Shown here: positions 1,993-33,200 of the stretch, piece by piece | Layout: the number at the start of each line of letters is the position of its first letter | How positions within the stretch are numbered: position 1 is the first letter of the stretch | Source of the DNA: Haliotis rufescens | Lineage: Eukaryota | Direction: 5' to 3' | DNA: 64,000 nucleotides | NCBI RefSeq assembly: GCF_023055435.1 | Contig: NW_025964354.1 | Span: 2,108,001 to 2,172,000, forward strand | Program-made: the position numbers and the translations under genes | Notes under the pieces: generated by a model | What the model was told of the DNA's origin: nothing | Databases searched by the model: none | The model's input: only the letters and a program-made list of their open reading frames with translations

Positions 1993-2591
1993 CTATATAT
2001 ATATAATAATAAACATTCTATGCCATAATGACATTGGACCTTTCTAGAAACAATATACATGCTAATCTCATGACTACTCTCTTAAGTACAACCCCTCATC
2101 ATTAGCTCTCAAAACGCGATGGAAGCCGTACGACACAACGAGGTACATTCTCATTGAAACAGATGTTCCAGTCAGCAAAGCAATCCTCAATATCATTAAT
2201 AAGATTCCCACTAACATGGAATACATGTGTTATTCATTAACCTGGCCTAAACAAAGAACAGGTAAGAGAGAATACCATGAATAACACCGTTGTCAACTAA
2301 ACTGTATAACACAAACAAGAAAAGGTTTTGTGCAAATTCTATTGAATTTTTATATAAAAATAAAATACAACTTGAAAACATCCATAAAGTCCTCAATGTT
2401 GCAGATAAACAGTGTTTGCATGTATAGCAGGACCCACCTGCACAGAGCATGCTTACATGAGATTGTGCAGACTCGTCCGTAATATTTCACGTGCTCATTC
2501 TCAAATTGCACTTACATAGGTTTTAAACTTATTTAAAACGTTAGGGTGTCTGTGTTGAATATGTTGAAAAGTCTAGTTTTTCTTGTCGCAG

Positions 2592-5500
2592 ATGGTGAGA
2601 GTGTCATCGTTAGAGAGACGGAAACGGCCTGATTCAGGTGGCAGGTGCCACGAGGGGCATCTGTCATTGCAATGTATGTACTAAACCCAAATGGAACCGG
2701 CGTCCTACTCGCTAACACAGCAAACCGGCACCTTGTTCTTCCTTTATATGAAGCCCGTGTCAACTTCAGTGGGAACTTGTCGGCAGGGCTTGTGATGTTT
2801 GATATGAGCAATGTCAGCGGATCTGATGCTGGGACGTACACGTGTGGTAACGGAGGAGTGACTCGTATCATTCCGAACTGTGGACAGACGCTCATTGTTC
2901 TAGGTGAGTGTATATCAATGCAATTCAACTTTTAGCCCAATATTTCCATCCTCAGGTGCTGAGAGTCAAACTACAGCCATCGCCTCCCCTGGAGATAACA
3001 GTACAATCAGCTTCATCATCCCACAAGGTGGTCTTGGGACAGGATCGTCATTCTACTTTGTTACACCAAGTGGTGTGATAGCCTTTATTGTATTCTCATC
3101 GGGAACATTTGTCGCCACAAATCCTTACAAAGATAGAGTAGTGTTTGAAGGCAGCTATTCCTCTAGGAACATCACATTTGTGCTGCAGAATATATCAAGA
3201 TCGGATGCTGGGCAGTATACATGTGGCATTGGGGGTGCTTCTAGTCTGATAGAGGGCTGTGGCTTGAAACTTATTGTCATTGGTATGTCGTTTGCAATTT
3301 GATAAGTGAATATATCTTCGTGTTATTAATCCATGATCATCAGCGAGGTAAAGGACAAATGCACAGGCATAATTCCACACACAACATCAATGTGACAGCA
3401 TCAAATCATATATAGTTATTCAGAGAGTATTATTATAAAGAATCCAATTCTTGACGAAAGCCCAAAATGAAATAAGGATGAACCGTCATCACGTGTGGCA
3501 TGGCTCATTATATTTAATCACCTGATGGCTTGAGTACAACTGGCTTGCCTGGCACAGACTCGAGTATTCACAGGCCGACTTGATATACCTTGAAACAACA
3601 TTTACTCAGTCATTCTCATATTTAAAAAATAGAGCACCGACAACCATTCCAAGTCGCCGTGAATACCTGTAAGATTGTTGAAGCGGCGTTTGGCAATATT
3701 CTCTCATCATTCCAGGTGAGCCGACCAAGCCAGTCATATCACTGCAATCTACTCCCGTGGTTGGCAGGAACGTCACGATGACGTGCTCATCTACATCTAC
3801 AACACTGCCTGCAGATCATGGACTGACCTTCACCTACACCTGGAAGATAGATGGTCTCAACATTACCTCGCCAGATGGCGCTAGTCTAACAGTTCCGGTT
3901 GAAAGTCATGACCAACCAGGTGTCACCTGTCACGTGACAGAGGATAAGGGCCTGGGAAGAGACAGTGACGTTCTGATGTTAACTCCTGACTGTAAGTATA
4001 TAACTATAGATTAACTGATACTGATCTGCATGTGGTGGTGGTACTTCTTGTTAGACAGTGTAACCACAGTGGAATGTCTACAACTTTGAACTGCATACAA
4101 ATGGTGTACTGCCAAGGTTACCATCACTCTGAACAATATTTCGATTGAATTAAGCTGAACAAAGATGGATTATACTTTTCCTAACTTGCCCGTACAGCAC
4201 AAAGTGGAAGGTTCATAATGTATATATAAATACTCAGTAGTGAAATATTACTTGCTAAACAAAAGTAATAAATATCCTTAATGATGAATATGCTATTTGG
4301 AAGGCACATGTCAAGTTACTTTTTATAAATAGACTACTGCACGTGTGTGTTGGGAAAGTCTTGCTTGGTTTGTAATATATATAAAACAAGGCTTTGTGTT
4401 TGAATTGATCATAGTGTCACACTATATATCCTTGATGATACGAATGAAAAGTTACGAAGAAGGTATTCAGTATTGAGTTTTATTTCTAATTATTTGACTT
4501 TACAATCGAATTGCAATAACTTTTGTTTACATAACTAAAAGCCAAGTTTTGGCGTTTGAATTGATTCGTAGCACTGATCTTACAGATCCTCCGTACAATG
4601 CCAGCATCTCGTCAACATCTGTACAAGTCAAGGAGGCTGACGTCGTACCCCAGGTCACGTGTGTCAGCACGTGTCGACCTGCATGCTCACATTCCTGGAA
4701 ACAAGGATCTCAGACAGTCGTGACTGGACAGGTCCTCACTCTTGGAGCAGCAAACAAGACCATGGCTGGCAGCTACGTGTGCAAGGCGACAAACGTATAT
4801 GGCACAATACAGAGTCCTGCTGTTTCACTTGATGTCCAATGTGCGTATGGCTGTATTTCATGTTAGAGTAAACCATGCTTGTGATAAGAGGCGACGAACG
4901 ATATCATGAGCATCAATTCACGGCAATTGTGATAACGTGAGTGAGTGAGTAAGTGAGTGTGGTTTTACGCCGCTTTTAGCAATATTCCAGCAATATCACG
5001 ACGGGGGACACCAGAAATGGGCTTCACACATTGTACCCATGTCGGGAATCGAACCCGGGTCTTTGGTGTGACCACTAGGCTACCCCACCGCCCCCAAATT
5101 TACTTGAGACATCATATATATTTACAGAGATGGTTTGCATATTTCAGCGTCTTCACTGTTGTATAGTCCTATTTTATCTAAAATGAAGTGAAGATACTTA
5201 TCACAATGTTTCTTAGTTTGCATAATTAAGACAAGTCGCATTACAACTAAGACGGAAGGTATAATTTAAATCCGCCTTTCACTCTTCAGATAAACCATCT
5301 GCAGTTTTAATGGCTAATGGTCAGTCCAATGCAACTGAAGTTGACGAAAGAGGCTCTGTGGTTCTGTCATGTGCAGTAGACAGTAATCCTTTCTCCAGCA
5401 TATCCATCATGAACGGCACTATTCGACTGAACCATGTGACAGAGGCAGCCGACGTCAGCTTCAACTGGACTGGAGCTGATTGTCTTGACGGCAGCGTCTA

Positions 5501-8459
5501 CACGTGTCTTGCAAGGAACATAGTTGGTGAAACGACAGCATCAGTAACAGTAAATATAAAATGTAGGTACCTTGATGAGGTATCTACCCGAGATATTCTT
5601 ACACCTATTGATATATTCTACCGGCACGTATATTACCTGGAAGAAGTATGGTCAATACTGACTGAAAATATTATTGGAAGTTAGAAGGTGATATGTTGAC
5701 TCATATCCTCATACTGACTTGTCAAGAAGCAATGTATTTGACAAGAAGTACGACTTTTCGATAAAGAAACTGCATTGATGATTCATCATGTATAAAACTA
5801 TAAAGTCACTGTCATTGCAATAAAATACTTGACAAAGAAATATTTTCAATGCAGGGAGAAACACGTGAAAAGAAATACTTTATACATTGAAGGTTCCCCG
5901 CGGCTCAATTTCCAATACCCCACAGGGAGGGACGTGTATGTTGACATAGGACAGCCAATCAGATTACAGGTGTACATCCTGGCCTTTCCACAACCGACCT
6001 TCACCTGGTTTAAACAGAATGGAGGTAGTGCAGAACCTGTCGACCTGTCAAAATGGCGCCAGTATGACGAGGCCATGACGTCATATATTGTCACAGATAT
6101 TGTTGAAGAGACGGATTATGGAGTGTATTATGTAAACGTCACAAACACACTTGGAAGGTTCCGAATGCAATTTCAACTTGGAGAGAAAGGTAGGTTTGAA
6201 TGAAATAATTGAACTCGCCTTTTACTTGCAAAATAAGTAGTTTTACGGAAACACTATTATAGGAACTTTATGAAGGTATGTTATTGTTTGTAAAGCAAAA
6301 CAATTTGATTGATAACACACACATGTACACATCCTTAGAGTGATTGTTTTCTTGTGATCATATCATGAAACTCTACGTCGTTTCCTTGTTCAATCTATAC
6401 TATGTCCCTCATCACATACAGCAACGCTTTCTGTACCGGAGAACTTCCAGTGTCAAAACAAAGCCGGCAGCTACATCCTTCAGTGGACACCGGGTGGTGA
6501 TGATGAGACAAGAGGCGTAGGGTTCCTGGTGGAACAAAGACTGCCACAGGCTAACTGGACCACAGTCTCCGCCACTGTTGCAAGTGATGGTATGATGAGA
6601 CATGTGCAGCTGCCTGAGTCTGGAGACAGGACCGTCTTCTTCAGGCTCTATGCTGCAGAGGGCGCTGCAAGGACGTCACCAGTGACAGCATCATGTACAA
6701 CAGTCACTGTTGCAGTGGACAATGGTATGTCAAACCGATAATGATTTTAGCGGTTCGTCGTTTGAGTTTTTTGGTGCTCACGTTTATAACGTCTCCAATA
6801 AACGTATTCTTAATTAGAAAAAGAAAAGATGATCATTAAGCTTGAAGTTTTCATTTTCTTCCATGGTTGGAGAATACAATGAGGCAGGTTAAATGTGATG
6901 CACTTCAAGACAGACCAAAGGTCTAAGCAAAAATATATAATTTCTCTAACGTGGGCGTTCGGATATCATATTTCTACTCGATGACTTTGTTTTGATAGAT
7001 GAAGTTATCCAAACTAACATCTCTTTCTCTGTGTTCAGGTGAGCTATCGTTCGGAGCAGGAGTGGGCGTTGGCCTTGTTGTTGCAGTAGCTGTTGTAGCA
7101 GTGTCCCTGGCTGTTGTTTGCATCTGCAGGAAGAAGTGCCTGTCATTGAAGAATGGTATGAAAACACAATGTGCATGGCTTATCAGGATAGGAGATGTTT
7201 GTCTCCCCTTAGACAAATCACTAGCTCATTTTATATTGCCATATGATATGAATGACGCTAAGACGTCTCTCGGAAATAAACACCTCCATTATAAACATGA
7301 AAATATTTGCAAAATAGCTGTCGACCTGCATTTTTAGTAGGCCTATGTATTTAATTATTTTGTAAGGAGCAGTTAGAATGATATGAAACAGAAAATGTAA
7401 ACATGAGCTGCACCACACTGTTAATACACTATTGATGACTGGGATGATTTGATCACGCAATAATTGTTACGAACATGACACGGGTACAAGCTGTTATAGT
7501 GTGGGAGATATGTGTTTCCAGATCCGTCGAGGCAGAAAGAAGAGGAGTCTGTGTAAGTACTTGTGGCTCTTGCTATACTTAACTAAGTGAGAACTGAAAC
7601 ATGTTGTTGCTGAATTGAAAGCAGAACAGATGTGTAGATCATTGTACCCTGTTATTACTGTATCAGTATAGACTATATCACTTGTGATAAAACGTAATTC
7701 GCAGTGGAAAGTTAATTCATGTTATATGGACACACACAATAGAATATCCTGCAATGTGACGCTACTGTTTCTATACAGATATCATGAGGTAGCTGCATCT
7801 ACCGTGACAACTCAGCACAGTCGCCAGCAACATCGTCAGTCGGGTAAAACAAGGATTATAGACTGGACATTAGTCACATTGCTGGACCCGAAAAAAACAA
7901 TATTGACTGTGGAAGAAGACGGTGGTCGATGTTGTTTTGTTTACCATAAAGCATTTAGTGGCCTAAAATATGATTGTTTTTATGTAAGAAAGCGACAAAG
8001 GCAGATTCAAAATAGAATGACACGAGATCGCTCCTTGGCGAATGAAATGGCGGAATTTCAAGTACATAAAGAAAAGAGGTATATATCCAATCCTTATCAA
8101 CCAATGCTAGGATTCAATGCGAATGTTTCAACCTGGTTATTGACGATCGTTTCAGTGATATGCAGGTCGTATGTCCTTGTTTCATAAAATATTAAGGTCA
8201 CAAGGAGGATTAAGATTGATTACCCACCACTAGTATTTATTGCGAGCTCAATCTTGTCACAAATAGGTTTCCTGTGCATGGTTTGTACAGGGGCGACCAC
8301 AGGCTGATGTGTAATAATATCATTACAGGCGCGGGGACATCTGGCAGCACTTACGACGCCCTCACATCTGACAGGGACACGCCAACTGAAGCACCAACTT
8401 ACGAGAAACTAGAGAAACAGTACGTGAACATGGCGGTGTCTGCTAATGATGAGACCTAA
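2592..8459 (+). CDS. IgSF receptor paralogue 1 (5'-partial; nonsense codon in V1, otherwise open)
   Basis: Exons: V1 2592-2903 (TGA at 2630-2632 where other copies have AGA), V2 2956-3282, Ig3 3716-3991, Ig4 4586-4840, Ig5 5290-5562, Ig6 5893-6189, FnIII 6422-6724, TM 7039-7155, cyt1 7522-7552, cyt2 7779-7843, cyt3 8329-8459. All AG/GT-bounded and in phase. Position 1 corresponds to sequence ~30 nt after the leader donor in other copies, so the leader is just outside the window. Confidence 0.75.
4937..5095 (-). mobile_element. SINE family A in the Ig4-Ig5 intron
   Basis: (GTGA)n, body and reverse B/A boxes. Equivalent copies at 19098-19258, 33490-33651 and 49291-49454; TSD-like caaatttacttga. 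Confidence 0.85.
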
Positions 8460-9780: not shown

Positions 9781-12430
9781 TATGTCAATTGTCAAGCAGA
9801 CTGAGTTGTTTGTTCCTCACATTCAGCAGTGTTAAATTCGCACATGCAACGCAAGGCTCATGTGAACGTGACGGCCTTGAAGCTTCTTTATTCTTCAGGG
9901 AAAGTGAGTGTTATGTTTTTATGCCACTTTCAGCTATATTCCAGCAATGATGAATGACTTATACATGTACAAATTCTCCAGCCCCAAAGCTGGAAACATA
10001 AAGAATTTCACCGAAGTGTCTCTGATATCAAATATATCAACACAATTCTTACAAGAGAAAAAATTCCAAGGCTTGAGCGATGATAAAGACAGGAGGTATT
10101 TATCATCCAAATTCACAGTCATGGTATGAGACAATAGATCCATTGAGTTCATTATGTTCATTATGAAAAACACACAGAATATATTAACTAGAGTTCAATA
10201 TAATTATTTAAATAGTATCTACAGGTTTCCAGATCATCTATGCACAGAACAGAATCAGAATTTATCACATTATTAACCATTCACCCAGTGATTATACACA
10301 ATGATAAATAACATATACATGTATATGTACAAATATTACATATATTTTCCAGTATCCTTACATAACATTCCCCCAAGACTGGAAACATAAAGAATCTCAC
10401 CGGAGTGTCTTTTGACATCAAATATATCAACACGGGTCTTTAAAGTGTAAAATTCCAGAATTGAGTGATGGTAAAGACAGGTGGGTGAGATTTTATTTAT
10501 CATCCAAAATCATTCTTCAATCTTTTACATTTTGTAAACAGTAATAATTAACTAGTGTCTTGAATGTTAAAAATACAGTAAACCATCTTCAGTAGCAGAG
10601 AGTATTGATGTCATTTGATTGTGATGTCCATGTAACTGAAGATTTTACAATAGTCTGTTTTGAAAAATGTACATACAAGATCAAATATGCACTCAACCCT
10701 CCTTGGTTAAACAATCATTTGATCAACATAAAACAAACAAATGTGTCATGATTTATGTTTATTTGAGTCGTATCAAGACTCTTTTGCTTAACAATAACTA
10801 TTTCAGTCAACATTGTCATACAATGAAGCAAATATATTCCACTGTGAGTATTGAACTTTCCACAATAATGTTTGCGCTAATCGAAAGAGAGGATCAAGTG
10901 TATATGACACCAAATTAAAAATGCATTATCGGCCATACGACGTTTGCTAACTGCGTCCGATGACTTTAATGGTAGTGTAGCCGGATGGTGGTGCTAACTC
11001 TGAATGAGTTATAGCCACATAAGTACCACCCACTTATAACCCCCTAGTATTTATTCTATACATAAATACATATATACATACATATATACATGTTCATCTA
11101 TTATCACCATCACATCATTCTGTGTTCATTATATGTTGTCCTTGTCTGCAGTTGAATGTCAGCCAACTAACATCAACCCTGATACCCTTATGCAGCCTCT
11201 GTGATTTCTCCAGCTTCACCTGGACTTGTTATACAATGTTTCATCAAAGTGCTATTATTTACAAAGGAAACGTTAAGAGGTTGTGATCAGTGAATTATCT
11301 TGTGTTCCCAATATCGAAGTATGGAACATTCTGATAATAGACTACATGTATAACACGATTGTGTATAAGACTTGCTATTCAGTCAGTGACAAGGAGTTAC
11401 ATGTAACGTGATCAGCGTGACGCCAGAGAGTATTCGTCAAGTTCCCAGTGAGACAAATTCATTAATCGGTACAAAGCAATGAATAGTGCAGCAACTTGAC
11501 ATATATACTTAATGATTGCCGTCAAAAAGTTATCGCCTTGTAGCAGGCTGTATAAATTAAATTTGTCAAACTATCCTTTCGTCTACGTTCAAGTATGGCC
11601 CATGCGAGAACATTATTTTCTAAGTATCTAAGTATGAGAATGTTCGTGACCCAAATTGACTCTTTCACCCTTTTGTACTCTTATTAGCTACATCCCAGAA
11701 GAAGGAATTGCTCATAGCTGGGAAATATTTGCTGAAAACCTAAAAAAATATGCATTTTGTTAATTTATACATTTTAGTCTTAATTATGCATTTAGTGCTT
11801 TTCATTAGTCCCACTTGTTAAAATGAAATGAACAAAGTTCACATCAATATTAACTCATCTGGTAACATTCATGGTTATGAATTGTTTGACAGGCATTACT
11901 TAGAAGCTGACGGATGACAAAGTAGACACAATTTGTTAAGGCGGCGTTTCGGTATAGATCCTTGTTTCGTTTTCAAGTTTAAATGTTTGCCTAATGTCTC
12001 ATATTATGCATATTCACAGTCAGAAAGAGCCCTTATTCCACCTTATGCGTTGATGCCATTGCAAAGACTATTGTGATCATGAAGTCATATTGTCAAGTGA
12101 CCCGGTCAATTAAGACAATGAACAGAGTTACGTCCCATAGTCGTCCCAGGATCCTAAATTCTCTCTGATTACGATTATTGTTCTGTCAGCACAACATCCT
12201 TGCTCGCTGGTTTCACAACAATCAATCTTTGCTCTTTCTCGCTCATTAAGCTGACACAGTGTAATACAACCTGAATACTGCTTAAAGCCCCTTTAAACCA
12301 ACTCTCTAACACCAAGGCACAATAATGTACACAACGACCGCCTTAACATGACATAGATATTAATGCGTGGTTGACGGGTATATATGTGTTGTTGCTTTGT
12401 GTCACAGTAACACTTACCCCTGTACACACC

Positions 12431-12500
12431 ACCCGGAAGTTGAAAGGCTCACCTGAAGTAGATATACCCGACTACATACCAACATGTGTATATGTCAGTT
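12431..12500 (+). promoter_or_regulatory. Putative TATA-less promoter: ETS site CCGGAAGT (12433-12440) and Inr-like TCAGTT (12495-12500)
   Basis: About 100 and 40 nt upstream of the leader ATG; both motifs kept upstream of 27168 and 43151. Motif match only. Confidence 0.4.
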
Positions 12501-13850
12501 CAGGGAAGTCTACAAATAGTCTGTGCAAAATCTTTCATGGAGATCAAAATACGCCATTTGTGGATTATTATCCTGATCTCATGTGGTGCCAGATGTAAGT
12601 ATATGTGAATTATATACGTGAAAATAGTACAGTTGAACTGCTTCACTGCACACAGCCCAGCACAGCGAACATTCTCGTGTGTGCTGTTCAGCAGAACGTA
12701 CATTCTCGTGTGCGCTGTACAGTAGAACGTACATACTCGTGTATGCCATTCTTTGGAATGAATCAGGTTCCGATCAATCTCTCAATAAAGATATTCTTTC
12801 AGTCTTGAGATCGTTAAACTCTAGCAATAACCTGACTAATGTAATTATACACGCTGTGCACAGGACTTAACAACAAGCAGGCCTCCATGCGTTAACCCTC
12901 TAACGCGCAGTACGTGATGTCCTCCGATTACATGCTTAGTCATACATGTGGCTGTTCACAAGGGATTTGTTCTAAACGGTTGGACGATGTGTACATATAA
13001 CATGTAGGTAATCGGAGGTGTCGACGTTCCTCTGTCCCGTATTCACCAGTGTTATCACCGGCCTATGCCACTCACTGTGCGATCACTAGCGGAATAACGC
13101 ACCCATTGTATGTGTAATTGAATGCTAAGCCATGTATGTAAAGATGCATAGAAATAAGAGGAAGTTAATCCCCGGGCAGTGACACCACATCAGCCCCTCT
13201 GTGTACAGGTGATATCACTTTAGTATCATTTGTCCAGCAATCATTCACCAGTTATGTATATATATAGCATTCAAACAAGCACAATGACGCCACCACGGGG
13301 GTTTTGACAGCAATGTAGGTCACAGGTACAAGCGACGTCCTGACAATTTCCAACCCCCAGTCCTGAAACACACCACCAAGACGTCAGAGGATACCTTATG
13401 TCGAGTTAAAAGTACACGTTTAGGGTTACGGCATTTTACAACAAATAGGAGAGGGGACATAGGGCTTATCGTCACGTTCAAGTAACTGCAGTTATATAGC
13501 GTTATACATGCATGTGTTCGTGAGCGTGTGTGTGTGTTGTGCGTGGGTGGGTGGGTGGGTGTGTATTTGTGACGTCACACTGTTGTCCTTGCAGTTGATT
13601 CTGCGCCAGGAAATACTAGCCATACGGAACGTGCATTTTAAAACTATAGGTCATTATGCAAAATAAAGTGAAATTTGGGCGTCTTTCCTTTTTCCAGAAT
13701 CAACAGATTTTCATGATATTTCGATTCTGTAGCATATTTAAACGTTTTTTGATATGACGCTGTAGCAAATAGAATTTGAATGGATGTGACATCTAAAACA
13801 CCGTGATTAGGCAAGAATGCTCAACTCGCTGAAGGGTTGGGGGGGGGGGG

Positions 13851-14309: not shown

Positions 14310-16644
14310 ACAACAACAACAACATACTAATATTGAATTAATCACATTTAGAAATAACACAGTATAGCACATGTCACAGTAGTATGACAGATACAAAAAA
14401 AGGGAGATAAGCGATACCTTACTTCTCACATCTAACAAGAAATAAATAGTATTACATTGAAGACAACCACTTTCATATGTTCAATAGACGTTTTTTGCTA
14501 GAACTTTAGTTCATATATAATACTATCCATTCTATGCCATAATAACATTGGACTTTTTTACAAACAATATATATGCTAATCTCATGACCACTCTCTTTAG
14601 TACCTCTCATCTTTAGCTCAACATCATTAGTACGACACCACGAGGTACATTCTCGTTGAGGCAGATGATCCAATCAGCAAACCAAAATCCTCGATATCAT
14701 AAATAAGATTCCCACTCACATGAAATACATGTGCTATTCATTAACCTGGCCCAAACGAAGAACAGGTAAGAGAGAATACCATGAACAATACCTTTGTTAA
14801 TAAAACTGTATAACACAAACAGGAAACGGTTTTGTGCAAATTCTATTGAATTTATATATACAAAATAAAATACAACTTGAAAACATCCATAAATTCCTCA
14901 CTGTTGCAGATAACCAGTGTTTGCATGTATAGCAGTACCAAATAACTGACTCTATGTTAAAGTGGTCGCTGAGATTGTGCAGGCTCATTCGCGATATTTC
15001 ACATTCTCAATTTGCACTTACACAGGTTTTATACGTATTTGAAACGTTAGGGTATTTGTGTTCAATATGTTGAAAAGTCGACTTTTTCTAGTCACAGATG
15101 GTGAGAGTGTCATCGTTAGAGAGACGGAAACGGCCAGATTCAGGTGGCAGGTGCCACGAGGGACATCTGTAACTGCAATGTATGTGCTAAACCCAAATGG
15201 GACCGGCGTCCTCCTCGCTAACACAGCAAACCGGCACCTTGTTCTTCCTTCACACTTCAGTGGGAACTTGTCGGCGGGGCTTGTGTCCTTTGATATGAAC
15301 AATGTCAGCAGATCTGATGCTGGGACTTACACTTGTGGTAACGGAGGACTGAGTGATATCATTCCGAACTGTGGACAGACGCTCGTTGTTCTAGGTGAGT
15401 GTATATCAATGCAATTCGATTTTTAGCCCTACATTTCCATCCTCAGATGCTGAGAGTCAGACTACAGCCATCGCCTACCCTGGAGATAACAGTACAGTCA
15501 GCTTCCTCATCCCACAAGGTGGTCTTGGGACAGGATCTTCATTCTACTTTGTTACACCAAGTGGTGTGATAGCCTTTATTCTTACAGCATCGGACGTATT
15601 CATAGCCACAGATCCATATAAAGATAGAGTAATTTTTGAAGGCAGCTATTCCTCGAGGAACATCACATTTGTGCTGAAGAACATTACAAGATCGGATGCA
15701 GGACATTATAATTGTAGCACTGCGGGGTCTACCAGTCATATACCGAACTGTGGCTTGAAGCTTATAGTCATCGGTATGTTGTTTACATTTGATAAATCAA
15801 CCATGTGCATACGATATGCATGTGTATCAGGAGCCAACTCAAATCAGAATAGAAAGGATTGTGTGTCTTCCTCACCTGACTCTAATAATATATAAAATGA
15901 CATAATATATACAAATAAACGACTTATCATAGCAAAATTTGTGTGTCTTGTAAAAGCGTGCCAACAATCATTTCAGGTGAGCCAACCAAGCCAGTCATAT
16001 CACTTCAATCTACTCCCGTGGTTGGCAGGAACGTCACAATGACGTGCTCATCTACATCTACAACACTGCCTGCAGATCATGGACTGACCTTCACCTACAC
16101 CTGGAAGATAGATGGTGTCAACATTAACTCGCCAGGTGGCGCTAGTCTAACAGTTCTGGTTGAGAGTCATGACCCACAAGATATCACCTGCCACGTGACA
16201 GAGGATGAGGGCCTGGGGGGAGATAGCGACGTTCTGATGATAACTCCTGACTGTAGGTATATAACTATAGATTACCAGATACACATCGGTATGTGGTGGT
16301 ACTTGTTGTTAGACAGTGTAACCACAGTGGAATGTCTACAACTTTGAACTGCATACAAATGGTGTAATGCCAAGGTTACCGTCACTCTGAACACTATTCC
16401 GATTGAATTAAACTGAACAAAGATAGATTATACTTTTCCTAACTTGCCTGTACAGCACAAAGTGGAAGGTTCATAATGTATATATAAATACTCAATAGTG
16501 TAATATTACTTGCTGAACAAAATACCCTGTAATGATAAATATGCTATTTGAAAGCACTACTGTACGTGTGTATTGGGAAAGTGTTGCTTGGTTTGTAATA
16601 TATATTATAAAAAAAGGCTTTGAGTTTGAATTGATCATAGTATA

Positions 16645-18224
16645 CACATGCACAACAGTTAAGCGCCACCGACCATATTTGTGAGCTGTTTCTTTCTAAT
16701 ATAACGAGATGTATGTACGAGTGTTATAAGCCGTATATGTAAACCTCATGTGATGCAAAAGTTGTCCCAAAGCAAGTTTTTCTTGTGTTCCAAAAGAATA
16801 TGAGCAGAATGGAATTTTACCCAAGACCAGAAATTGAAGGATTAGAAAACATTGAAAAACTTTTTCTGTCATGTAACTGTCATGATATCAGCAGATCAAA
16901 TCAGTTGTCACATAGACACCCTAGGGTGTGCAGAGTCTATTGCAAGACAGAAACGTCAGTAACGTGTGTATGATCCACGGACATTGACCACAGCTTCAAC
17001 CCTACGCCCTCATACTCATTACAAGTCGTTGAATGCTTCTCTGAGGCAAACGGATCCATTCTTCATGAAGTGCGGCTTCAAGTCCAGCGAGATTTTGAAC
17101 TGGGGGATCACTATGTCTGATTTTCCGGCCAAGAATGTCCAAGAGATGCTCAATCGGATTAAGATCCGGACTACAGGCCGGCCAAGGAAGAGTAACAATA
17201 GCTTCTTGACGCAAATAAGCCAAAACTGCCCGAGATCTTTGTGGTCTAGCATTGTCGTCCATGTAAACAGGTCTTGTCTGAAGAGGATGGTTGTCTTAAT
17301 GAGGGACTACCACTGGACAAAGAACGGCATCTTGGCATTGTTAGCAATTCAGGTTTCCACGAATTGTCACCAGCGGAAGTTTGCAGCCGAAGGAAACACA
17401 ACCCCCTGCCACATGCTAAGGTCTTCTGGATGTTACTTGGTGCAAAACGAGCATTACGTTGCCTCCAAACACGTATTCGACCATCAACAGTTCAAAGGAG
17501 CATTCGACACTCGTCAGACCAATGGATCCTTCTCCAGTTGGCCAAGTTCCATCGACTATGGGCACAACACCATATCAGACGATTCCCCATGTGCCTCTCA
17601 GTCAGTTGAGTGAGTGAGTGAGTGAGTGAGTATGGTTTTACGCCGCTTTTAGCAATATGCCAGCAATATCACGGCGAAGACACCATAAATGGGCTTCACA
17701 CATTGTACCCATGTCGGGAATCGAACCTGGGTCTTCGGCGTGACGAGCGAACGCTTTAACCACTAGGCTACCCGACCGCCCCCAGTCAGTTGAGGACGTT
17801 TTACTGGTCTTCTGGCGTTATATCTGATGGATAATTCACTGCAGTCTTAAATCTGTTCATGTGGCAAATGGATTTCGTCTGACTATCCTTAAAAGATGTC
17901 TATCCTCTCTGTTAGAGGTCTTTCTTGGACTAAGAGACCTATGCCTGTCATTGACATCATTGGTTTGACCATGTTTGACAATCAAACGAGTGATAACACT
18001 GATGACGACCCATTTGTCTTGCAGTGGCCCTGCATGACATGCCAGCAATTTTCATGCCTATCACTTGCCATCTTTCAGCGTTCGTTTCCTTTCCTTGTGG
18101 TATCTGGACAGATGTGGGTTCATGAAACTATGGAGGCCTAATTCAATCATCTTTCGTATTTCTGATTCCCACACGTGAAATCAAGAGACTATGAATATGG
18201 TGGCGCTTAATTTTTGTGCATGTG
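16645..18224 (-). mobile_element. Tc1/mariner (DD34E) DNA transposon, defective, with nested SINE A (17611-17782)
   Basis: TA-flanked 26-bp TIRs CACATGCACAACAGTTAAGCGCCACC / GGTGGCGCTTAATTTTTGTGCATGTG. Minus-strand motifs WSDEC, MDDNARP and WPACSPDLNPIE with 34 residues between D and E. SINE TSD CAGTCAGTTGAG. Confidence 0.92.
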
Positions 18225-22200: not shown

Positions 22201-23379
22201 AAAGGCAGATTCAAAATAGAATGACATGAGATCGCTCCTTGGCGAATGAAATGGCGGAATTTCAAGTACATAAAGAAAAGAGGTATATATCCAATCCTTG
22301 TCAACCAATGCTAGGATTCAATGCGAATGTTTCAACCTGGTTATCGACGATCGTTTCAGTGATATGCAGGTCGTATGTCCTTGTTTCATAAAATATTGAG
22401 GTCACAAGGAGGATTAAGATTGATTACCCACCACTAGTATTTATTGCGAGCTCAATCTTGTCACAAATAGGTTTACTGTGCATGATTTGTACTGGGGGCG
22501 ACCACAGGCTGATGTGTAATAATATCATTACAGGCGCGGGGACATCTGGCAGCACTTACGACGCCCTCACATCTGACAGGGACACGCCAACTGAAGCACC
22601 AACTTACGAGAAACTAGAGAAACAGTACGTGAACATGGCGGTGTCTGCTGATGATGAGACCTAACTGCAAAGACCAAATTGTGTACAATGTACGAAGGTC
22701 AAAGCAGCACATTCACATGTCTCGTTATACGTCTTCCATGAGGTCTGGGCTTACATCAGTCGCTTGACTCTATCTTTCCATTTGAAAACGTCTGAGACGC
22801 TATCATTCGAAGTGCCGAGTTACGTCCCTTAGGTGTGCCAGACGCCCGTGATCGTGTGTCTCTCAGATTTAGTTGTGGTTACCCTTCGTAGCTTTTCCGC
22901 ACCGTACCTCTGATCGTGGGTTTCTTCAAATCAGTTTTCCTCCTGCACCAAGCGTTGACGCAATATATATAACTGAAGATTTCCTACACAGCTGCCTTAA
23001 ACTCCTTACCCAATAAGAGCTACTGATTTCAGAGATGTACATTGTTTCACCAAAGCAAGCTTATTTTCAGAAACTTATACATATTTACATGTATATACAT
23101 ATACATATTTTTAAAGACAGCTTAAGAGAGATTATGTATTGTCTGAGGATGGTTAGATATAGCTGTAGTCACTAAAGCACTGTGCAGTAGGGAACAATAC
23201 GGCGGGCTTCACAAACACACATGCCACGACATAGTATACACATGAAGCCTCATAGTAGACTTGACGTACGTATGATGCGCTAACTTATTTTCCAATCTCG
23301 TGTGCGGAATTATCGTTATGATATTGAGGGGCAGCATTACCCAATCGTCACTCAGTTCTCTATGTAAATTTGCATTTCT

Positions 23380-25107: not shown

Positions 25108-27167
25108 CAGGTGGGTGAGATTTTATTTATCATCCAAAATCATTCTTCCAACTTTTACATTTTGTAAACAGTAATAATTAACTACTGTCTTGAGTGTTGA
25201 AAATACAGTTAACCATCTTCAGCAGCAGAGAGTATTGATGTCATTTGATTGTGATGTCCATGCAACTGAAGATTTTACAATAGTCTGTTTTGAAAAATGT
25301 ACATACAAGATCAAATTTTCACTCAACCCTCCTTGGTTAAACAATCATTTGATCAACATGAAACAAACTAATGTGTCATGATTTATGTTTATTTGAGTCG
25401 TATCAAGACACTTTTGCTGAACAATAACTATTTCAGTGAACATTGTCATACAATGAAGCAAATAACTTCAACTGTGAGTATTGAACTTTCCACAATAATG
25501 TTTGCGCTCGTTGAAAGAGAGGATCAAGTGTATATAACACCAAATTAAAAATGCATTATCGGCCATACCACGTATGCTAACTGCGTCCGATGACTTTAAT
25601 GGTAGTGTAGCCGGGTGGTGGTGCTAACTCTGAATGAGTTATAGCCACATAAGTACCACCCACTTATAACCCCCTAGTATTCATTCTATACATAAATACA
25701 TATATACATACATATATACATGTTCATCTATTTATCACCATCACATCATTCTGTGTTCATTATATGTTGTCTTTGTCTGCAGTTGAATGTCAGCCAACTA
25801 ACATCAACCCTGATACCCTTATGCAGCCTCTGTGATTTCTCCAGCTTCACCTGGACTTGTTATGCAATGTTTCATCAAAGTGCTATTATTTACAAAGGAA
25901 ACGTTAAGAGGTTGTGATCAGTGAATTAGCTTGTGTTCCCAATATCGAAGTATGGAACATTCTGATAATAGACTACATGTATAACACGATTGTGTATAAG
26001 ACTTGCTATTCAGTCAGTGACAAGGAGTTACATGTAACGTGATCAGCGTGACGCCAGAGAGTATTCGTCAAGTTCCCAGTGAGACAAATTCATTAATCGG
26101 TACAAAGCAATGAATAGTGCAGCAACTTGACATATATACCTAATGATTGCCGTCAAATAGTTATCGCCTTGTAGCAGACTGTATAAATTAAATTTGTCAA
26201 ACTATCCTTTCGTCTACGTTCAAGTATGGCCCATGCGAGAACATTATTTTCTAAGTATCTAAGTATGAGAATGTTCGTGACCCAAATTGACTCTTTCACC
26301 CTTTTGTACTCTTATTAGCTACATCCCAGAAGAAGGAATTGCTCATAGCTGGGAAATATTTGCTGAAAACCTAAAAAAATATGCATTTTGTTAATTTATA
26401 CATTTTAGTCTTAATTATGCATTTAGTGCTTTTCATTAGTCCCACTTGTTAAAATGAAATGAACAAAGTTCACATCAATATTAACTCATCTGGTAACATT
26501 CATGGTTATGAATTGTTTGACAGGCATTACTTAGAAGCTGACGGATGACAAAGTAGACACAATTTGTTAAGGCGGCGTTTCGGTATAGATCCTTGTTTCG
26601 TTTTCAAGTTTAAATGTTTGCCTAATGTCTCATATTATGCATATTCACAGTCAGAAAGAGCCCTTATTCCACCTTATGCGTTGATGCCATTGCAAAGACT
26701 ATTGTGATCATGAAGTCATATTGTCAAGTGACCCGGTCAATTAAGACAATGAACAGAGTTACGTCCCATAGTCGTCCCAGGATCCTAAATTCTCTCTGAT
26801 TACGATTATTGTTCTGTCAGCACAACATCCTTGCTCGTTGGTTTCACAACAATCAATCTTTGCTCTTTCTCGCTCATTAAGCTGACACAGTGTAATACAA
26901 CCTGAATACTGCTTAAAGCCCCTTTAAACCAACTCTCTAACACCAAGGCACAATAATGTACACAACGACCGCCTTAACATGACATAGATATTAATGCGTG
27001 GTTGACGGGTATATATGTGTTGTTGCTTTGTGTCACAGTAACACTTACCCCTGTACACACCACCCGGAAGTTGAAAGGCTCACCTGAAGTAGATATACCC
27101 GACTACATACCAACATGTGTATATGTCAGTTCAGGGAAGTCTACAAATAGTCTGTGCAAAATCTTTC

Positions 27168-27225
27168 ATGGAGATCAAAATACGCCATTTGTGGATTATT
27201 ATCCTGATCTCATGTGGTGCCAGAT
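27168..27225 (+). CDS. Copy 3 exon 1: signal peptide MEIKIRHLWIIILISCGAR
   Basis: Basic n-region, hydrophobic core LWIIILISC, phase-1 GTAAGT donor. Same peptide at 12537-12594 and 43151-43208. Confidence 0.85.
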
Positions 27226-30200
27226 GTAAGTATATGTGAATTATATACGTGAAAATAGTACAGTTGAACTGCTTCACTGCACACAGCCCAGCACAGCGAA
27301 CATTCTCGTGTGTGCTGTTCAGCAGAACGTACATTCTCGTGTGCGCTGTACAGTAGAACGTACATACTCGTGTATGCCATTCTTTGGAATGAATCAGGTT
27401 CCGATCAATCTCTCAATAAAGATATTCTTTCAGTCTTGAGATCGTTAAACTCTAGCAATAACCTGACTAATGTAATTATACACGCTGTGCACAGGACTTA
27501 ACAACAAGCAGGCCTCCATGCGTTAACCCTCTAACGCGCAGTACGTGATGTCCTCCGATTACATGCTTAGTCATACATGTGGCTGTTCACAAGGGATTTG
27601 TTCTAAACGGTTGGACGATGTGTACATATAACATGTAGGTAATCGGAGGTGTCGACGTTCCTCTGTCCCGTATTCACCAGTGTTATCACCGGCCTATGCC
27701 ACTCACTGTGCGATCACTAGCGGAATAACGCACCCATTGTATGTGTAATTGAATGCTAAGCCATGTATGTAAAGATGCATAGAAATAAGAGGAAGTTAAT
27801 CCCCGGGCAGTGACACCACATCAGCCCCTCTGTGTACAGGTGATATCGCTTTAGTATTATTTGTCCAGCAATCATTCACCAGTTATGTATATATATAGCA
27901 TTCAAACAAGCACAATGACGCCACCACGGGGGTTTTGACAGCAATGTAGGTCACAGGTACAAGCGACGTCCTGACAATTTCCAACCCCCAGTCCTGAAAC
28001 ACACCACCAAGACGTCAGAGGATACCTTATGTCGAGTTAAAAGTACACGTTTAGGGTTACGGCATTTTACAACAAATAGGAGAGGGGACATAGGGCTTAT
28101 CGTCACGTTCAAGTAACTGCAGTTATATAGCGTTATACATGCATGTGTTCGTGAGCGTTTGTGTGTGTTGTGCGGTGGGTGGGTGGGTGTGTATTTGTGA
28201 CGTCACACTGTTGTCCTTGCAGTTGTTGATTCTGCGCCAGGAGATACTAGCCATACGGAACGTGCATTTTAAAACTATATGTCATTATGCAAAATAAAGA
28301 GAAATTTGGGCCTCATTCCTTTTTCCGGAATCAACAGATTTTCATGATATTTCGATTCTGTAGCATATTTAAACGTTTTTTGATATGACGCTGTAGCAAA
28401 TAGAATTTGAATGGATGTGACATCTAAAACACCGTGATTAGGCAAGAATGCTCAACTCGCTGAAGGGTTGGGGGGGGGGGGGGGGGGGGGGGGGAGGGAG
28501 GGTGCGGTCGGGTAGACTTGTGGTTAAAGCGTTCGTTCGTCACGCCAAAGTGTGAGTGAGTGAGTGAGTGAGTGAGTGAGTTGAGTTTAACGCCGCTTTT
28601 AACAGTATTCCAGTTATATCACAGCGTGTCAGCTTAATGTGGGAGGAAAGCCCGAAGTGATGCAGGTCTCAGACATTTACCACTTCGGTGAAACCCACGA
28701 GCACTGGTATGGTGCTGACAAACCTAGAAACATAATCGGGGCGAACCGGGATTGGAACCCACAATCATAGGTTTCTTGCGTGCCCAAGGGACGCAACTCT
28801 GCACAGCGAATCGCGGCGCCTTAGACGACTAGGCCACCCGTGCCCCGTCACGCCAAAGACCCGGGTTCGATTCCCAACATGGGTACAATGTGTGAAGCTC
28901 AGTTTTGGTGTTCCCGGCCATGAAAGTTCTGGAATATTGCTAAAAGTGGCATAAAACCATACACACTACAACAACAACAACATACTCATATTGAATTAAT
29001 CACATTTAGAAATAACACAGTATAGCACATGTCACAGTAGTATGACAGATACAAAAAAAGGGAGATAAGCGATACCTTACTTCTCACATCTAACAAGAAA
29101 TAAATAGTATTACATTGAAGACAACCACTTTCATATGTTCAATAGACGTTTTTGGCTAGAACTTTAGTTCATATATACTACTATCCATTCTATGCCATAA
29201 TAACATTGAACTTTTTTACAAACAATATATATGCTAATCTCATGTCCACTCTCTTTAGTACAACCTCTCATCTTTAGCTCGACATCATTAGTACGACACC
29301 ACGAGGTACATTCTCGTTGAGGCAGATGATCCAATCAGCAAACCAAAATCCTCAATATCATAAATAAGATTCACACTAACATGAAATACATGTGCTATTC
29401 ATTAACCTGGCCTAAACGAAGAACAGGTAAGAGAGAATACCATGTACAATACCTTTGTTAACAAAACTGTATAACACAAACAGGAAACGGTTTTGTGCAA
29501 ATTCTATTGAATTTATATATACAAAATAAAATACAACTTGAAAACATCCATAAATTCCTCACTGTTGCAGATAACCAGTGTTTGCATGTATAGCAGTACC
29601 AAATAACTGACTCTATGTTAAAGTGGTCGCTGAGATTGTGCAGGCTCATTCGCGATATTTCACATTCTCAATTTGCACTTACACAGGTTTTATACGTATT
29701 TGAAACGTTAGGGTATTTGTGTTCAATATGTTGAAAAGTCGACTTTTTCTAGTCACAGATGGTGAGAGTGTCATCGTTAGAGAGACGGAAACGGCCAGAT
29801 TCAGGTGGCAGGTGCCACGAGGGACATCTGTCCTTGCAATGTATGTGCTGAACCAAAATGGAACCGGCGTCCTCCTCGCTAACACAGCAAACCGGCACCT
29901 TGTTGCTCCTTCATATGAAGCCCGTGTCAACTTCAGTGGGAACTTGTCGGCGGGGCTTGTATCCTTTGATATGAGCAATGTCAGCAGATCTGATGCTGGG
30001 ACTAACACGTGTGGTAACGGAGGGCTGAGTGATATCATTCCGAACTGTGGACAGACGCTCATTGTTCTAGGTGAGTGTATATCAATGCAATTCGATTTTT
30101 AGCCCTACATTTCCATCCTCAGATGCTGAGAGTCAGACTACAGCCATCGCCTCCCCTGGAGATAACAGTAGAGTCAGCTTCCTCATCCCACAAGGTGGTC

Positions 30201-33200
30201 TTGGGACCGGATCTTCATTCTACTTTGTTACACCAAGTGGTGTGATAGCCTTTATTCTTACAGCATCGGACGTATTCATAGCCACAGATCCATATAAAGA
30301 TAGAGTAATTTTTGAAGGCAGCTATTCCTCGAGGAACATCACATTTGTGCTGGAGAACATTACAAGATCGGATGCAGGACATTATAATTGTAGCAATGCA
30401 GGTTCTACCAATCAGATACCGAACTGTGGCTTGAAGCTTATAGTCATCGGTATGTTGTTTACATTTGATAAATCAATACATGTTGATATTCATAACCCTT
30501 TGTACAGTTACATCCTGTTCCCACAACCATGTGCATACACGTTGAACAGCTGTGGGATATGAATGTGTATCACACTGTGTCTGTAGCAGGAGCCATCTCA
30601 AATCAGAATAGAAAGTATTGTGTGTCTTCCTCACCTGACTCGAATAATATATAAAATGACATAATATAAACAAATAAACGACTTATCATAGCAAATTGTA
30701 TGCTAGATTTACACTCCTTGTCACAAAATGTGTGTGTCTTGTAAAAGCGTGCCAACAATCATTTCAGGGCTCCTTTGTGACAGTAATAACATTATACAAT
30801 AAAGAAGGATTTGAGGGACATGGCAAGGGCTATATGATAGTGAGTACAATGCAATGTTGCGTACAAGCCATCATGACAGATTAAACGACCTATCACAGTA
30901 GATTGTATACTACATTGTACATTCCTTCTCCAAGAATGTGTGTTTCTTGTAAAAGAGTGCCAACAATCATTCCAGGTGAGCCGACCAAGCCAGTCATATC
31001 ACTTCAATCTACTCCCGTGGTTGGCAGGAACGTCACGATGACGTGCTCATCTACATCTACAACACTACCTGCAGATCATGGACTGACCTTCACCTACACC
31101 TGGAAGATAGATGGTGTCAACATTAACTTGCCAGGTGGCGCTAGTCTAACAGTTCTGGTTGAGAGTCATGACCCACAAGGTATCACCTGCCACGTGACAG
31201 AGGATGAGGGCCTGGGGGGAGATAGCGACGTTCTGATGATAACTCCTGACTGTAAGTATATAGCTATAGATTACCAGATACACATCTGTATGTGGTGCAA
31301 CTGTAACCACATTGGAATGTCTACAACTTTGAACTGCATACAAATGGTGTAATACCAAGGTTACCGTCACGATATTCCGATTGAATTAAACTGAACAAAG
31401 ATAGATTATACTTTTCCTAACTTGCCTGTACAGCACAAAGTGGAAGGTTCATAATGTATATATAAATACTCAATAGTGTAATATTACTTGCTGAACAAAA
31501 TACCCTGTAATGATAAATACGATATTTGGAAGGCACTACTGTAGGTGTGTGTTGGGAAAGAGTTGCTTGGTTTGTAATATATATTATAAAACAAGGCTTT
31601 GAGTTTGAATTGATCATAGTATACACATGCACAACAGTTAAGCGCCACCCACCATATTTGTGAGCTGTTTCTTTCTAATATAACGAGATGTATGTACGAG
31701 TGTTATAAGCCGTATATGTAAACCTCATGTGATGCAAAAGTTGTCCCAAAGCAAGTTTTTCTTGTGTTCACATCAGGTGTCACATAGACACCCTAGGGAG
31801 TGCAGAGTCTATTGCAAGACAGAAACGTCAGTAACGTGTGTGTGATGGCATTGTTAGCAATTCAGGTTTCCACGAATTGTCCAGCGGAAGTTTGCAGCCG
31901 AAGGAAACACAACCCCCTGCCACATGCTAAGGTCTTCTGGATGTTACTTGGTGCAAAACGAGCATTACGTTGCCTCCAAACACGTATTCGACCATCAACA
32001 GTTCGAAGCAACATTCGACACTCGTCAGACCAATGGATCCTTCTCCAGTTGGCCAAGTTCCATCGACTATGGGCACGACACCATATCAGACGATTCCGCA
32101 TGTGCCTCTCAGTCAGTTGAGGACGTTTTACTGGTCTTATGGCGTTATAACCAGCCGCTCTTAGGCGACGCCTTACGGTCATCGTCGAGAGTCTCTGATG
32201 GGTAATTCACTGCAGTCTTAAATCTGTTCAAGTGGCAAATGGATTTCGTCTGACTATCCTGAAAAGACGTCTATCCTCTCTGTTAGAGGTCTTTCTTGGA
32301 CTAAGAGACCTATGCCTGTCATTGACATCATTGGTTTGACCATGTTTGACAATCAAACGAGTGATAACACTGATGACGACCCATTTGTCTTGCAGTGGCC
32401 CTGCATGACATGCCAGCAATTTTCATGCCTATCACTTGCCATCTTTCAGCGTTCGTTTCATTTCCTTGTGGTATCTGGACAGATGTTGGTTCCTGAAACT
32501 ATGGAGGCCTAATTCAATCATCTTTCGTATTTCTGATTCCCACACGTGAAATCAAGAGACTATGAATATGGTGGCGCTTAATTTTTGTGCATGTGTATAT
32601 AACACTATATATATTTATATTCTAAAACGACATATGTCTTTCTCCTTGATGATACGAATGGAACATTTAGAAGAACGTATTCAGTATTGAGTTATATTTC
32701 TAATTATTTGACTTTACAATCGAATTGCAATTACTTTCGTTTATGTAACTAAAAACCAAGTTTGAATTGATTCCAAGCACTGATCTTACAGATCCTCCGT
32801 ACAATGCCAGCATCTCGCCAGCATCTGTACAAGTCAAGGAGACTGACGTCGTACCCCAGGTCACGTGTGTCAGCACGTGTCGACCTGCATGCTCATATTC
32901 CTGGAAACAAGGATCTCAGACAGTCGTGACTGGACAGGTGCTCAGTCTTGGTGCAGCAAACAGGACCATGGCTGGCAGCTACGTGTGCACGGCGACTAAC
33001 GTATATGGCATAACACAGAGTCCTGCTGTTTCACTTGATGTCCAATGTGCGTAGGGCTGCATTTCATGTTAGAGTAAACCATGCTTGTGATAAGAGGCGA
33101 CGAACGGGATCTGGCCCTCTGACTTGCGTAGATCGATGATCATGATTTCAATCACTGGATTGTCTGGTCCAGAAACGATTCAACAACAACTGGCGTTAAA

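Follow-up and report, generated by a model that had tools for sequence, protein, structure and literature searches.

Bases 3190–3282 of a 64-kb stretch of Haliotis rufescens DNA (positions 2108001–2172000 of the contig labelled C576, in a 1.33-Gb assembly; this whole stretch is called the window here) form the 93-base end of exon V2 in copy 1 of four paralogous immunoglobulin (Ig)-superfamily receptor genes arranged in tandem. We read them, with a probability of roughly 0.55, as encoding the F-G hairpin of a real V-set variant with a probable clamp disulfide, carried on diversified germline-encoded receptor heads. Two observations carry this reading. The arrangement of Cys residues in the V exons is real and far beyond chance, and so is the concentration of differences between paralogues in two segments that resemble the second and third complementarity-determining regions (CDR2 and CDR3) of vertebrate V domains.

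The four genes lie on the + strand within the window, have GT-AG introns, and devote one phase-1 exon to each Ig domain. Exon order in each copy is V1, a 52-nt intron, V2, Ig3, Ig4, Ig5, Ig6 (I-set), a fibronectin-III-like (fn3) exon, a transmembrane exon and tail exons. The window exons were searched singly, and full-length context was taken from the database proteins P0006, P0013 and P0106. The gene copies, their V exons and the parts of copy-1 V2 discussed below are as follows.

Gene copies 1, 2, 3 and 4, + strand: starts near 2586, 15092, 29753 and 45179; stops near 8459, 22664, 38556 and 54238.
2956–3282, + strand: exon V2 of copy 1, phase 1-1, 109 codons including split ones, AG/GT borders; V-set-like, with Phe at the B-strand Cys position.
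3190–3282, + strand: end of copy-1 V2, encoding SRSDAGQYTC (F strand), GIGGASSLIEG (F-G hairpin) and CGLKLIVIG (G strand); Cys codons at 3222–3224 and 3258–3260.
3090–3122, + strand: C'-C'' segment of copy-1 V2, residues 45–55, VFSSGTFVATN; the second variable segment.
15447–15773, + strand: exon V2 of copy 2, with F-G loop STAGSTSHIPN.
30123–30449, + strand: exon V2 of copy 3, with F-G loop SNAGSTNQIPN.
45505–45831, + strand: exon V2 of copy 4, one residue different from copy 2.
2586–2903, + strand: exon V1 of copy 1, decayed, with an in-frame TGA at 2630–2632 and TAG>TTG at the likely acceptor, 2583–2585.
15092–15394, + strand: exon V1 of copy 2, from which a 15-bp in-frame deletion removes YEARV.
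29753–30070, + strand: exon V1 of copy 3, open frame, with Tyr>Asn in DAGTNTC.
45179–45452, + strand: exon V1 of copy 4, broken by a 44-bp frameshifting deletion.

The original prediction, made from the letters of the window, placed a second Cys 12 residues after the F-strand Cys, and this is true of all eight window V exons: the regular expression D[AS]G.Y.C.{11}CG matches seven of them, and the eighth, copy-3 V1, has DAGTNTC and then C-x11-C-G. The V1 and V2 loop sequences that it quoted were all correct on re-reading, and the extent it gave was exact, 3282 being the final base of exon V2. Its statement that neither V domain has the B-strand Cys or the C-strand Trp was confirmed against the predicted strands. 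The further statement that both domains keep Y-x-x-R-V and D-A-G-x-Y-x-C stands except for V1, where it fails in two of the four copies (copy 2 has YEARV deleted and copy 3 has Asn for Tyr). Copy-1 V2 contains exactly two Cys residues, Cys89 in predicted strand F (85–91) and Cys101 in predicted strand G (97–107). The position of the B-strand Cys, 70 residues before Cys89 and inside predicted strand B, holds Phe19 in window V2 and Trp in V1, in the C479 and C90 types and in nearly all relatives, an equivalence drawn from spacing and the predicted strand rather than from a residue-level structural alignment. Strand C reads SFYFV in V2 or AMYVL in V1, with no Trp, and Tyr33 is invariant in a six-sequence alignment of window V exons; in the F strand, S-D-A-G and the Cys are invariant and the Tyr is nearly so in 25 sequences. 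The window V exons thus lack two features that define the V-set, the disulfide from B-strand Cys to F-strand Cys and the conserved strand-C Trp, and keep a third, the tyrosine corner D-x-G-x-Y-x-C.

The V-type fold of the V1 and V2 heads is well supported as a prediction. AlphaFold2 gave copy-1 V2 a predicted local distance difference test score (pLDDT) of 86.6 and a predicted template-modelling score (pTM) of 0.76 from a 25-sequence alignment, and gave an undamaged V1, taken from the next gene upstream of the window, a pLDDT of 92.9 and pTM of 0.85 from a 20-sequence alignment. Both models have nine strands, A, B, C, C', C'', D, E, F and G (assigned by DSSP), with the first Cys inside F and the second inside G. 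Against the PDB, Foldseek found 500 or more matches at E ≤ 0.001; antibody V domains, MPZL1 and P0 head the list, with template-modelling (TM) scores of 0.65–0.76. VIA, a search independent of Foldseek, gave Z scores of 11.5–13.3 over 89–103 aligned residues, with Necl-4 D1 (13.3), 4bfi_B, a chain of the CD200R-CD200 complex (13.0), 3alp_A, described as 'cell adhesion protein' (12.7), and nectin-1 D1 (5b21; 12.6) at the top, and antibody, T cell receptor (TCR), CD48 (12.2), NTB-A (11.6) and CD58 (11.6) among the further matches. The nine-strand topology and these matches uphold the earlier call of a V domain. Look-alikes in the ESM Atlas were generic V-set clusters at 0.95. At the level of sequence, single exons scored 24.3, 21.6 and 20.1 bits against the Pfam V-set model PF07686, whose gathering cut-off is 26, and only the C''-to-G half aligned; the full-length database relatives P0013 (30.3) and P0006 (35.7) exceed that cut-off. 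In a profile search of the PDB the best sequence matches were pIgR V domains, over C''-F only, and among the best matches listed no alignment reached the G-strand Cys.

A six-frame search of the genome with V2 found at least 74 exon matches at E ≤ 0.01, and three arrays were seen: C576 2.05–2.17 Mb (seven genes, including those of the window), C479 2.0–3.03 Mb and C90 3.3–6.5 Mb. The Cys pair is present in 48 of the 50 genomic V exons examined, with 11 residues between the two Cys at 28 loci, 14 at 18 loci, 10 at one and 5 at one; the two loci without it are a truncated exon (L006) and one with no clear frame (L050). The C90 array (loci L031–L049) holds about 30 near-identical 118-residue V exons with four Cys, C-x6-C at the predicted C-C' turn and C-x14-CG in the F-G hairpin.

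When 1.84 billion representative proteins were searched with a profile, 923 matched at E ≤ 0.001; the best 150 of these were listed, and 152 sequences were examined for the motif. Among the matches listed, 33 of the 152 sequences carry it, with 4–16 residues between the Cys. Source names were to hand for 32 of these 33, and the bearers include 22 from Haliotis (H. rufescens, H. rubra, H. cracherodii and H. asinina), four from Bulinus truncatus and one from Biomphalaria pfeifferi; three more, from outside the molluscs (fish P0066 and P0076, coral P0079), only match the pattern and were left out of the family. The regular expression missed two domains that have a downstream Cys (P0027 364–442 and P0074 235–318). 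Among the same matches, 47 of the 48 database domains with Trp or Phe at the B-strand position and a strand-F Cys also have the G-strand Cys. A comparison meant to show whether B- and G-strand Cys exclude each other in ordinary Ig domains yielded 71 alignments that reach the B-strand position; of its results only the figure of 47 in 48 is used here, the 15 rows classed as 'other' being probably misaligned by one or two residues. A word-based search returned 34 proteins, 33 of them from Haliotis and the remaining one weak. Bulinus P0106 aligns collinearly with the abalone protein along 421 residues (26% identity, E 6e-28). It shares the V-like head, the Ig domains and fn3, and its C-terminal tail carries a tyrosine motif, with HYDAL at a place similar to that of STYDAL in the abalone tail. 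The receptor type is therefore older than the abalones, and at least this type of head and this layout extend to heterobranch snails. The source annotations of the relatives are generic (hemicentin-2-like, turtle-like, nephrin-like), and no prior description of this Cys arrangement was found in the literature searched, the coverage of which stops short of subscription journals and paper supplements.

Differences between copies 1 and 2 in V2, which had been put at 24 of 109 residues, were recounted as 23 among the 108 residues in frame, to which the split junction codon (Gly/Asp) adds one. Fifteen of them fall in two 11-residue segments, 7 in VFSSGTFVATN (45–55) and 8 in the F-G loop (90–100), as had been reported, and Ig6 differs at 2 positions, over 98 residues. 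Clustering of 15 of the 23 differences into two such segments was reached in 0 of 2,000 permutations. Entropy and per-codon replacement both peak at 45–55 (the C' end, C'-C'' turn and C'') and at 90–97 (the F-G tip), and the stem I98-x-x-C-G-x-x-L-x-V shows no variation. Since copies 2 and 4 share 98.4% identity across 2.4 kb, their identical loops do not count as independent observations. Across 33 proteins from four Haliotis species, in P0006 numbering, mean entropy is 1.14–1.31 at 61–80 (C'-C'') and 0.89 at 111–120 (F-G loop); elsewhere in the same proteins it is 0.10–0.45 in the framework and mostly 0.15–0.64 in Ig3–Ig5, and the parts near the membrane (fn3, stalk and tail) vary at least as much. 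The differences listed among individuals in exon V2 are both replacements, 3186 C>A (Q77K; runs X3 and X7) and 3229 T>G (I91S, in the F-G loop; X15 and X3), and 79 further individual differences lie beyond these over 6 kb.

Pairwise Nei-Gojobori omega (dN/dS) was higher in the loops than in the framework in the C576 V2 group (1.02 vs 0.26, n = 5), the C479 group (1.35 vs 0.45, n = 14) and the V1 group (2.99 vs 0.43, n = 5), with the near-identical rows L002, L010, L013 and L020 and the truncated L006 omitted. Counts of replacement and silent changes (N:S) by parsimony on a tree, omitting L006 and L030 and, from the C90 set, L046 and L050, were as follows, the Fisher values being p for loops against framework.

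C576 V2, n = 6: loop N:S 31:9, loop omega 1.20, p(omega>1) = 0.39; framework omega 0.33; Fisher 0.016.
C479, n = 17: loop N:S 81.8:20.2, loop omega 1.51, p(omega>1) = 0.05; framework omega 0.47; Fisher 0.0003.
V1, n = 5: loop N:S 25.5:2.5, loop omega 3.58, p(omega>1) = 0.013; framework omega 0.48; Fisher 0.0017.
C90, n = 18: loop N:S 33:27, loop omega 0.40, p(omega>1) = 1; framework omega 0.37; Fisher 1.0.

The framework is under purifying selection, and loop replacements are as frequent as silent changes or more so, C90 excepted. Loops and framework hardly differ in silent changes per silent site, which confines the excess to replacements. With the C479 and V1 groups pooled, the parsimony counts give a loop omega of 1.71 (p = 0.012). 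Replacement profiles along the domain correlate between C479 and V1 (rho 0.41, p = 9e-6) and between C576 V2 and C479 (rho 0.26, p = 0.007), and those of C479 and C90 are uncorrelated (rho 0.00). The earlier proposal of a diversifying binding face therefore stands in part: variable sites cluster in the predicted C'-C'' hairpin and F-G tip, and N:S there is unlike that of the framework in three groups, but omega above 1 is only marginal and is absent in C90. Positive selection on the loops is suggested, not secured, by these counts, and since omega is not reliably above 1 across groups, relaxed constraint may be at work instead.

Four sequencing runs were aligned to 2460–8459, X15 and X16 being likely RNA and X3 and X7 DNA. 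X15 record 3 joins 4613–4840, 5290–5562, 5893–6187 and 6420–6629, and X16 record 8 joins the last three of these; as spliced molecules they confirm borders of Ig4, Ig5, Ig6 and FN3. Of the 275 letters of X15 record 1, 131 fit 2956–3086 and the other 144 fit nowhere in 2460–2955, so in this likely RNA the V2 acceptor at 2956 is used with an upstream partner that is not copy-1 V1. X15 has depth 0 over 2460–2859; X16 has depth 3.7–12 over the V1 bins and none over 3060–3259. The RefSeq model P0013 (XP_048242916.1, Haliotis rufescens) includes the copy-1 exons from Ig3 on (3716–8459) and splices the leader and V1 of the upstream gene (locus L025) straight to copy-1 Ig3, skipping three V exons; the model possibly fuses two paralogues into a chimera. 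Two V heads stand in tandem in H. rubra P0001, against a single one in H. cracherodii P0006, so that either head usage is variable or the gene models are uncertain. The contigs and the broken V1 exons are compatible with a choice between V1 and V2 or with loss of V1, and fall short of proving that the two exclude each other. As all exons are phase 1, the V1 exon can be skipped without loss of frame. The remaining exons of the gene are listed here.

12347–12595, 26978–27226 and 42971–43219, + strand: leader exon of copies 2–4, with MSVQGSLHIVCAKSFMEIKIRHLWIIILISCGAR, about 2.0–2.6 kb upstream of V1; the copy-1 leader falls before the window start.
3716–3991, + strand: exon Ig3 of copy 1, with the canonical B-F Cys pair; end taken from the reading frame, not RNA.
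4586–4840, + strand: exon Ig4 of copy 1; 3' border confirmed by a spliced contig.
5290–5562, + strand: exon Ig5 of copy 1; both borders confirmed by spliced contigs (X15 record 3 and X16 record 8).
5893–6187, + strand: exon Ig6 (I-set) of copy 1; both borders confirmed by spliced contigs.
6420–6727, + strand: fibronectin-III-like exon of copy 1; 5' border from a spliced contig, 3' end approximate.
7039–7155, + strand: transmembrane exon of copy 1; borders approximate.
8326–8459, + strand: last coding exon of copy 1, with STYDAL..PTYEKL..KQYVNM..DET and stop at 8457–8459.
8346–8459, 22551–22664, 38443–38556 and 54125–54238, + strand: conserved tail ends of copies 1–4, STYDAL..P(T/A)YEKL..KQYVNM.

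We take the tail motifs STYDAL, P(T/A)YEKL and KQYVNM to be tyrosine motifs of the immunoreceptor tyrosine-based inhibitory motif (ITIM)-like and YxNM/YxxM-like kinds.

All four V1 exons are damaged, each differently: those of copies 1 and 4 are broken and those of copies 2 and 3 damaged. Neither the in-frame TGA and acceptor change in copy 1 nor the deletion in copy 4 had been noticed by the original prediction. In all four V2 exons and in the exons downstream, the reading frames are open and the splice sites preserved. This array seems to be losing its V1 exons.

Several points count against a diversified, disulfide-clamped receptor head. The window's own V2 group has a loop omega that is not significantly above 1, and the C90 subfamily shows no loop excess. 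The two variable segments were picked on amino-acid differences in C576 V2, a circularity that leaves only C479, V1 and C90 as independent tests; the counts are small (2.5 silent changes in V1 loops), and the parsimony was run on one tree despite evident gene conversion. The V1 exons are partly pseudo-exons. That X15 and X16 are RNA is a guess made by the tool, and expression levels cannot be read from contigs. In the copy-1 V2 model, DSSP assigns a five-residue turn (92–96) between strands 85–91 and 97–107, and a plain turn of that length would pair residue 89 with 99 and 87 with 101, which would put the two Cys diagonal to each other and not opposite.

The alternative that survives best, and that we consider possible if doubtful, accepts the domain and Cys pair as described and attributes the loop variation to neutral change: the hairpins would be merely unconstrained, gene conversion would even out the framework, the copy-1 V segment would come from an older lineage, and there would be no selection for diversity. 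The omega of the window's V2 group (1.20 on the tree, 1.02 in pairs), the flat C90 loops and the decay of V1 in the same array all suit it, as does the history of the V segment. Copies 1 and 2 have a mosaic identity, 85.7% in the V segment and 93.6% downstream, and their non-coding DNA has diverged by 0.114 upstream, roughly double the value in the introns downstream (0.045–0.081). Exon distances between them are 0.070 for V1, 0.124 for V2, 0.069 for Ig3, 0.047 for Ig4, 0.040 for Ig5, 0.010 for Ig6 and 0.044 for fn3. The copy-1 V segment as a whole therefore predates the remainder of the gene; this is consistent with gene conversion or unequal exchange, and it explains part of the contrast between V2 and Ig6. 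Against neutrality, exon V2 (0.124) has diverged further than the non-coding DNA beside it, as a constrained exon seldom does; two independent groups have loop omegas of 1.51 and 3.58 and are jointly above 1; the excess is specific to replacements at about equal silent rates; and the replacement profiles of C479 and V1 agree. Selection for diversity in the recognition of a putative ligand is likely.

The earlier proposal that an F-G disulfide replaces the canonical bridge finds its support in comparison. Because the two Cys are the only ones of the extracellular domain and are kept together, and because all length variation (4–16 residues) is confined between them, a local F-G disulfide joining them is the most economical reading and, as an inference from sequence, a strong one. 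The domain is a variant of the V-set fold, with a probable hairpin-clamping disulfide. A bulge before Cys101 would set the two Cys opposite each other, and the conserved [P/Q/E]-[N/G/D]-C-G resembles the bulged F-G-x-G of J segments. It is unlikely that the two Cys are not bonded together, the F-strand Cys being a buried free thiol left from a lost pair and the G-strand Cys being free or engaged in an inter-chain bond for receptor dimerization. The strand limits do allow a diagonal placement, and V domains without any disulfide exist, CD48 and CD58 D1 being among our structural matches. However, both Cys are kept together over spacings of 4–16 across vetigastropods and heterobranchs, the C90 subfamily adds a second local pair, C-x6-C at the predicted C-C' turn, in keeping with a tendency to clamp hairpins, and an odd free Cys on an extracellular domain is unusual.

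That the window copies are dying genes in a degenerating array, with loop differences of no functional meaning, is highly improbable, for although V1 is broken in two copies and damaged in the other two and copies 2–4 carry large Ig3-Ig4 intron insertions, the V2 and downstream exons are intact in frame and splice sites in all four copies, the framework omega of 0.33 marks constraint, spliced contigs span copy-1 exons including V2, and V1 can be skipped with the frame kept.

The mechanism that we propose for the clamped, diversified head is as follows. The F-strand Cys of the tyrosine corner is retained, a new Cys followed by Gly opens the G strand, Trp or Phe stands in place of the B-strand Cys, and strand C has no Trp. 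The two Cys most likely bond, clamping the base of the F-G hairpin, so that a local bridge would stand in for the sheet-to-sheet one. In the predicted single-pass receptor, one or more V-like heads lie farthest from the membrane; then come four Ig domains of the ordinary kind and a single fibronectin-III domain, and after the membrane anchor a tail with tyrosine motifs. Paralogues vary mainly at the tip of the F-G hairpin and in the neighboring C'-C'' hairpin, over a constrained framework. Within the window, copy-1 V2 is intact and is spliced into likely RNA, and the V1 exons are decaying. The concentration of paralogue variation in the loops points to a family of germline-encoded receptor heads with CDR2/CDR3-like variable patches, and the best functional reading, we infer, would be a germline-diversified recognition head on a signaling receptor.

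Three stretches of repeated or inserted DNA were seen beside the exons. Copies 2–4 have a large insertion in the Ig3-Ig4 intron (16700–18200, 31800–32500 and 46800–47700) with overlapping open frames of up to 216 residues, and copy 1 is without it; the 216-aa frame matched no Pfam family, and the insertion is possibly a degraded mobile element. In the Ig4-Ig5 intron of copy 1, 4860–5260 reaches contig depths of 10^5–10^7 in each of the four runs, with numerous joints and loose ends, and is a very high-copy repeat; a tRNA was sought in and near this stretch and none was found. A tandem repeat at 62851–63401, with a period of about 48 bases, is open in three frames (e.g., SPFSSTPPVLSTLF), and its part 62851–63327 matched no Pfam family.

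Cys23 and Trp41, the marks of nearly every Ig V domain, are both gone from a fold that is nevertheless confidently predicted and that recurs in at least 74 exons of one genome. If the relocated, hairpin-clamping disulfide is true, it would be a new way to stabilize a V domain. The variation sits where vertebrate V domains bind ligand, on receptors with tyrosine-motif tails, which makes this a candidate germline-diversified receptor family for the comparative immunology of gastropods, including farmed abalone and schistosome-vector snails. A more far-reaching synthesis can be offered tentatively: gastropods may have evolved antigen-receptor-like V heads of their own, in which the core disulfide shifted and came to clamp the hairpin equivalent to CDR3; tandem arrays with dozens of genes would have diversified the clamped tip and C'-C'' under positive selection; skippable phase-1 V exons might give a combinatorial choice of heads; and the resulting germline repertoire would signal through inhibitory and activating tyrosine motifs in immunity or allorecognition.

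The abalone heads share with canonical V-set domains (PF07686; antibody and TCR V domains, P0/MPZL1, nectin D1) the nine strands with C' and C'', the D-strand Y-x-x-R, the F-strand D-x-G-x-Y-x-C, a Gly right after the G-strand anchor residue and a phase-1 exon per domain; they differ in lacking the B-strand Cys and C-strand Trp (Cys23 and Trp41) and in having a Cys that opens strand G. The N-terminal V domains of CD2, CD58, CD48 and the SLAM family also do without the canonical bridge, and SLAM-type receptors have tyrosine-motif tails. These are likewise V-type heads of surface receptors without a sheet-to-sheet bridge, but they lack the F-strand Cys and the F-G Cys pair, and are related in sequence only via the fold. 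V domains of the pIgR/NKp44 type have an extra C-C' disulfide, to which the extra C-x6-C near the predicted C-C' turn of the C90 subfamily can be likened; pIgR V domains, in contrast, keep the canonical bridge.

Amphioxus VCBPs and teleost NITRs have V-type heads with variable loops, and in NITRs the V head is paired with a tyrosine-motif tail, as in the abalone receptors. Like these two germline-diversified families and the FREPs of snails, the abalone genes make up a large multigene family, in tandem, whose V-type heads vary chiefly in their loops. The Ig domains of snail FREPs, according to PMC7588048, have a Cys loop of more than 40 residues, accompany a fibrinogen domain and are secreted, and the survey described there took only loops of at least 40 residues, so the abalone class, with its 11-residue loop, would be filtered out. 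The window gene is not a FREP by these marks: its Cys loop is 11 residues long, and no fibrinogen domain was found in it or in its relatives. Surveys for long Cys loops that follow the criterion given in that text miss this class, and molluscan Ig-superfamily repertoires may have been undercounted. A link to the snail resistance clusters GRC and PTC2 was considered and rejected, as the genes there, according to PMC7494358, are without known domains and without homology outside gastropods. A Cys pair tied to the F-G (CDR3) loop of a V-type domain is also described, in PMC11926128, for the Ig-EV domains of sponge SAML/RTK (C-5X-C), in a germline-encoded receptor, and for CDR-H3 of human, cow, chicken, camelid and shark. 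In these, both Cys lie within the loop and the B-F bridge and Trp are kept, whereas in the abalone heads the F-strand Cys would itself be a partner and the B-strand Cys is gone.

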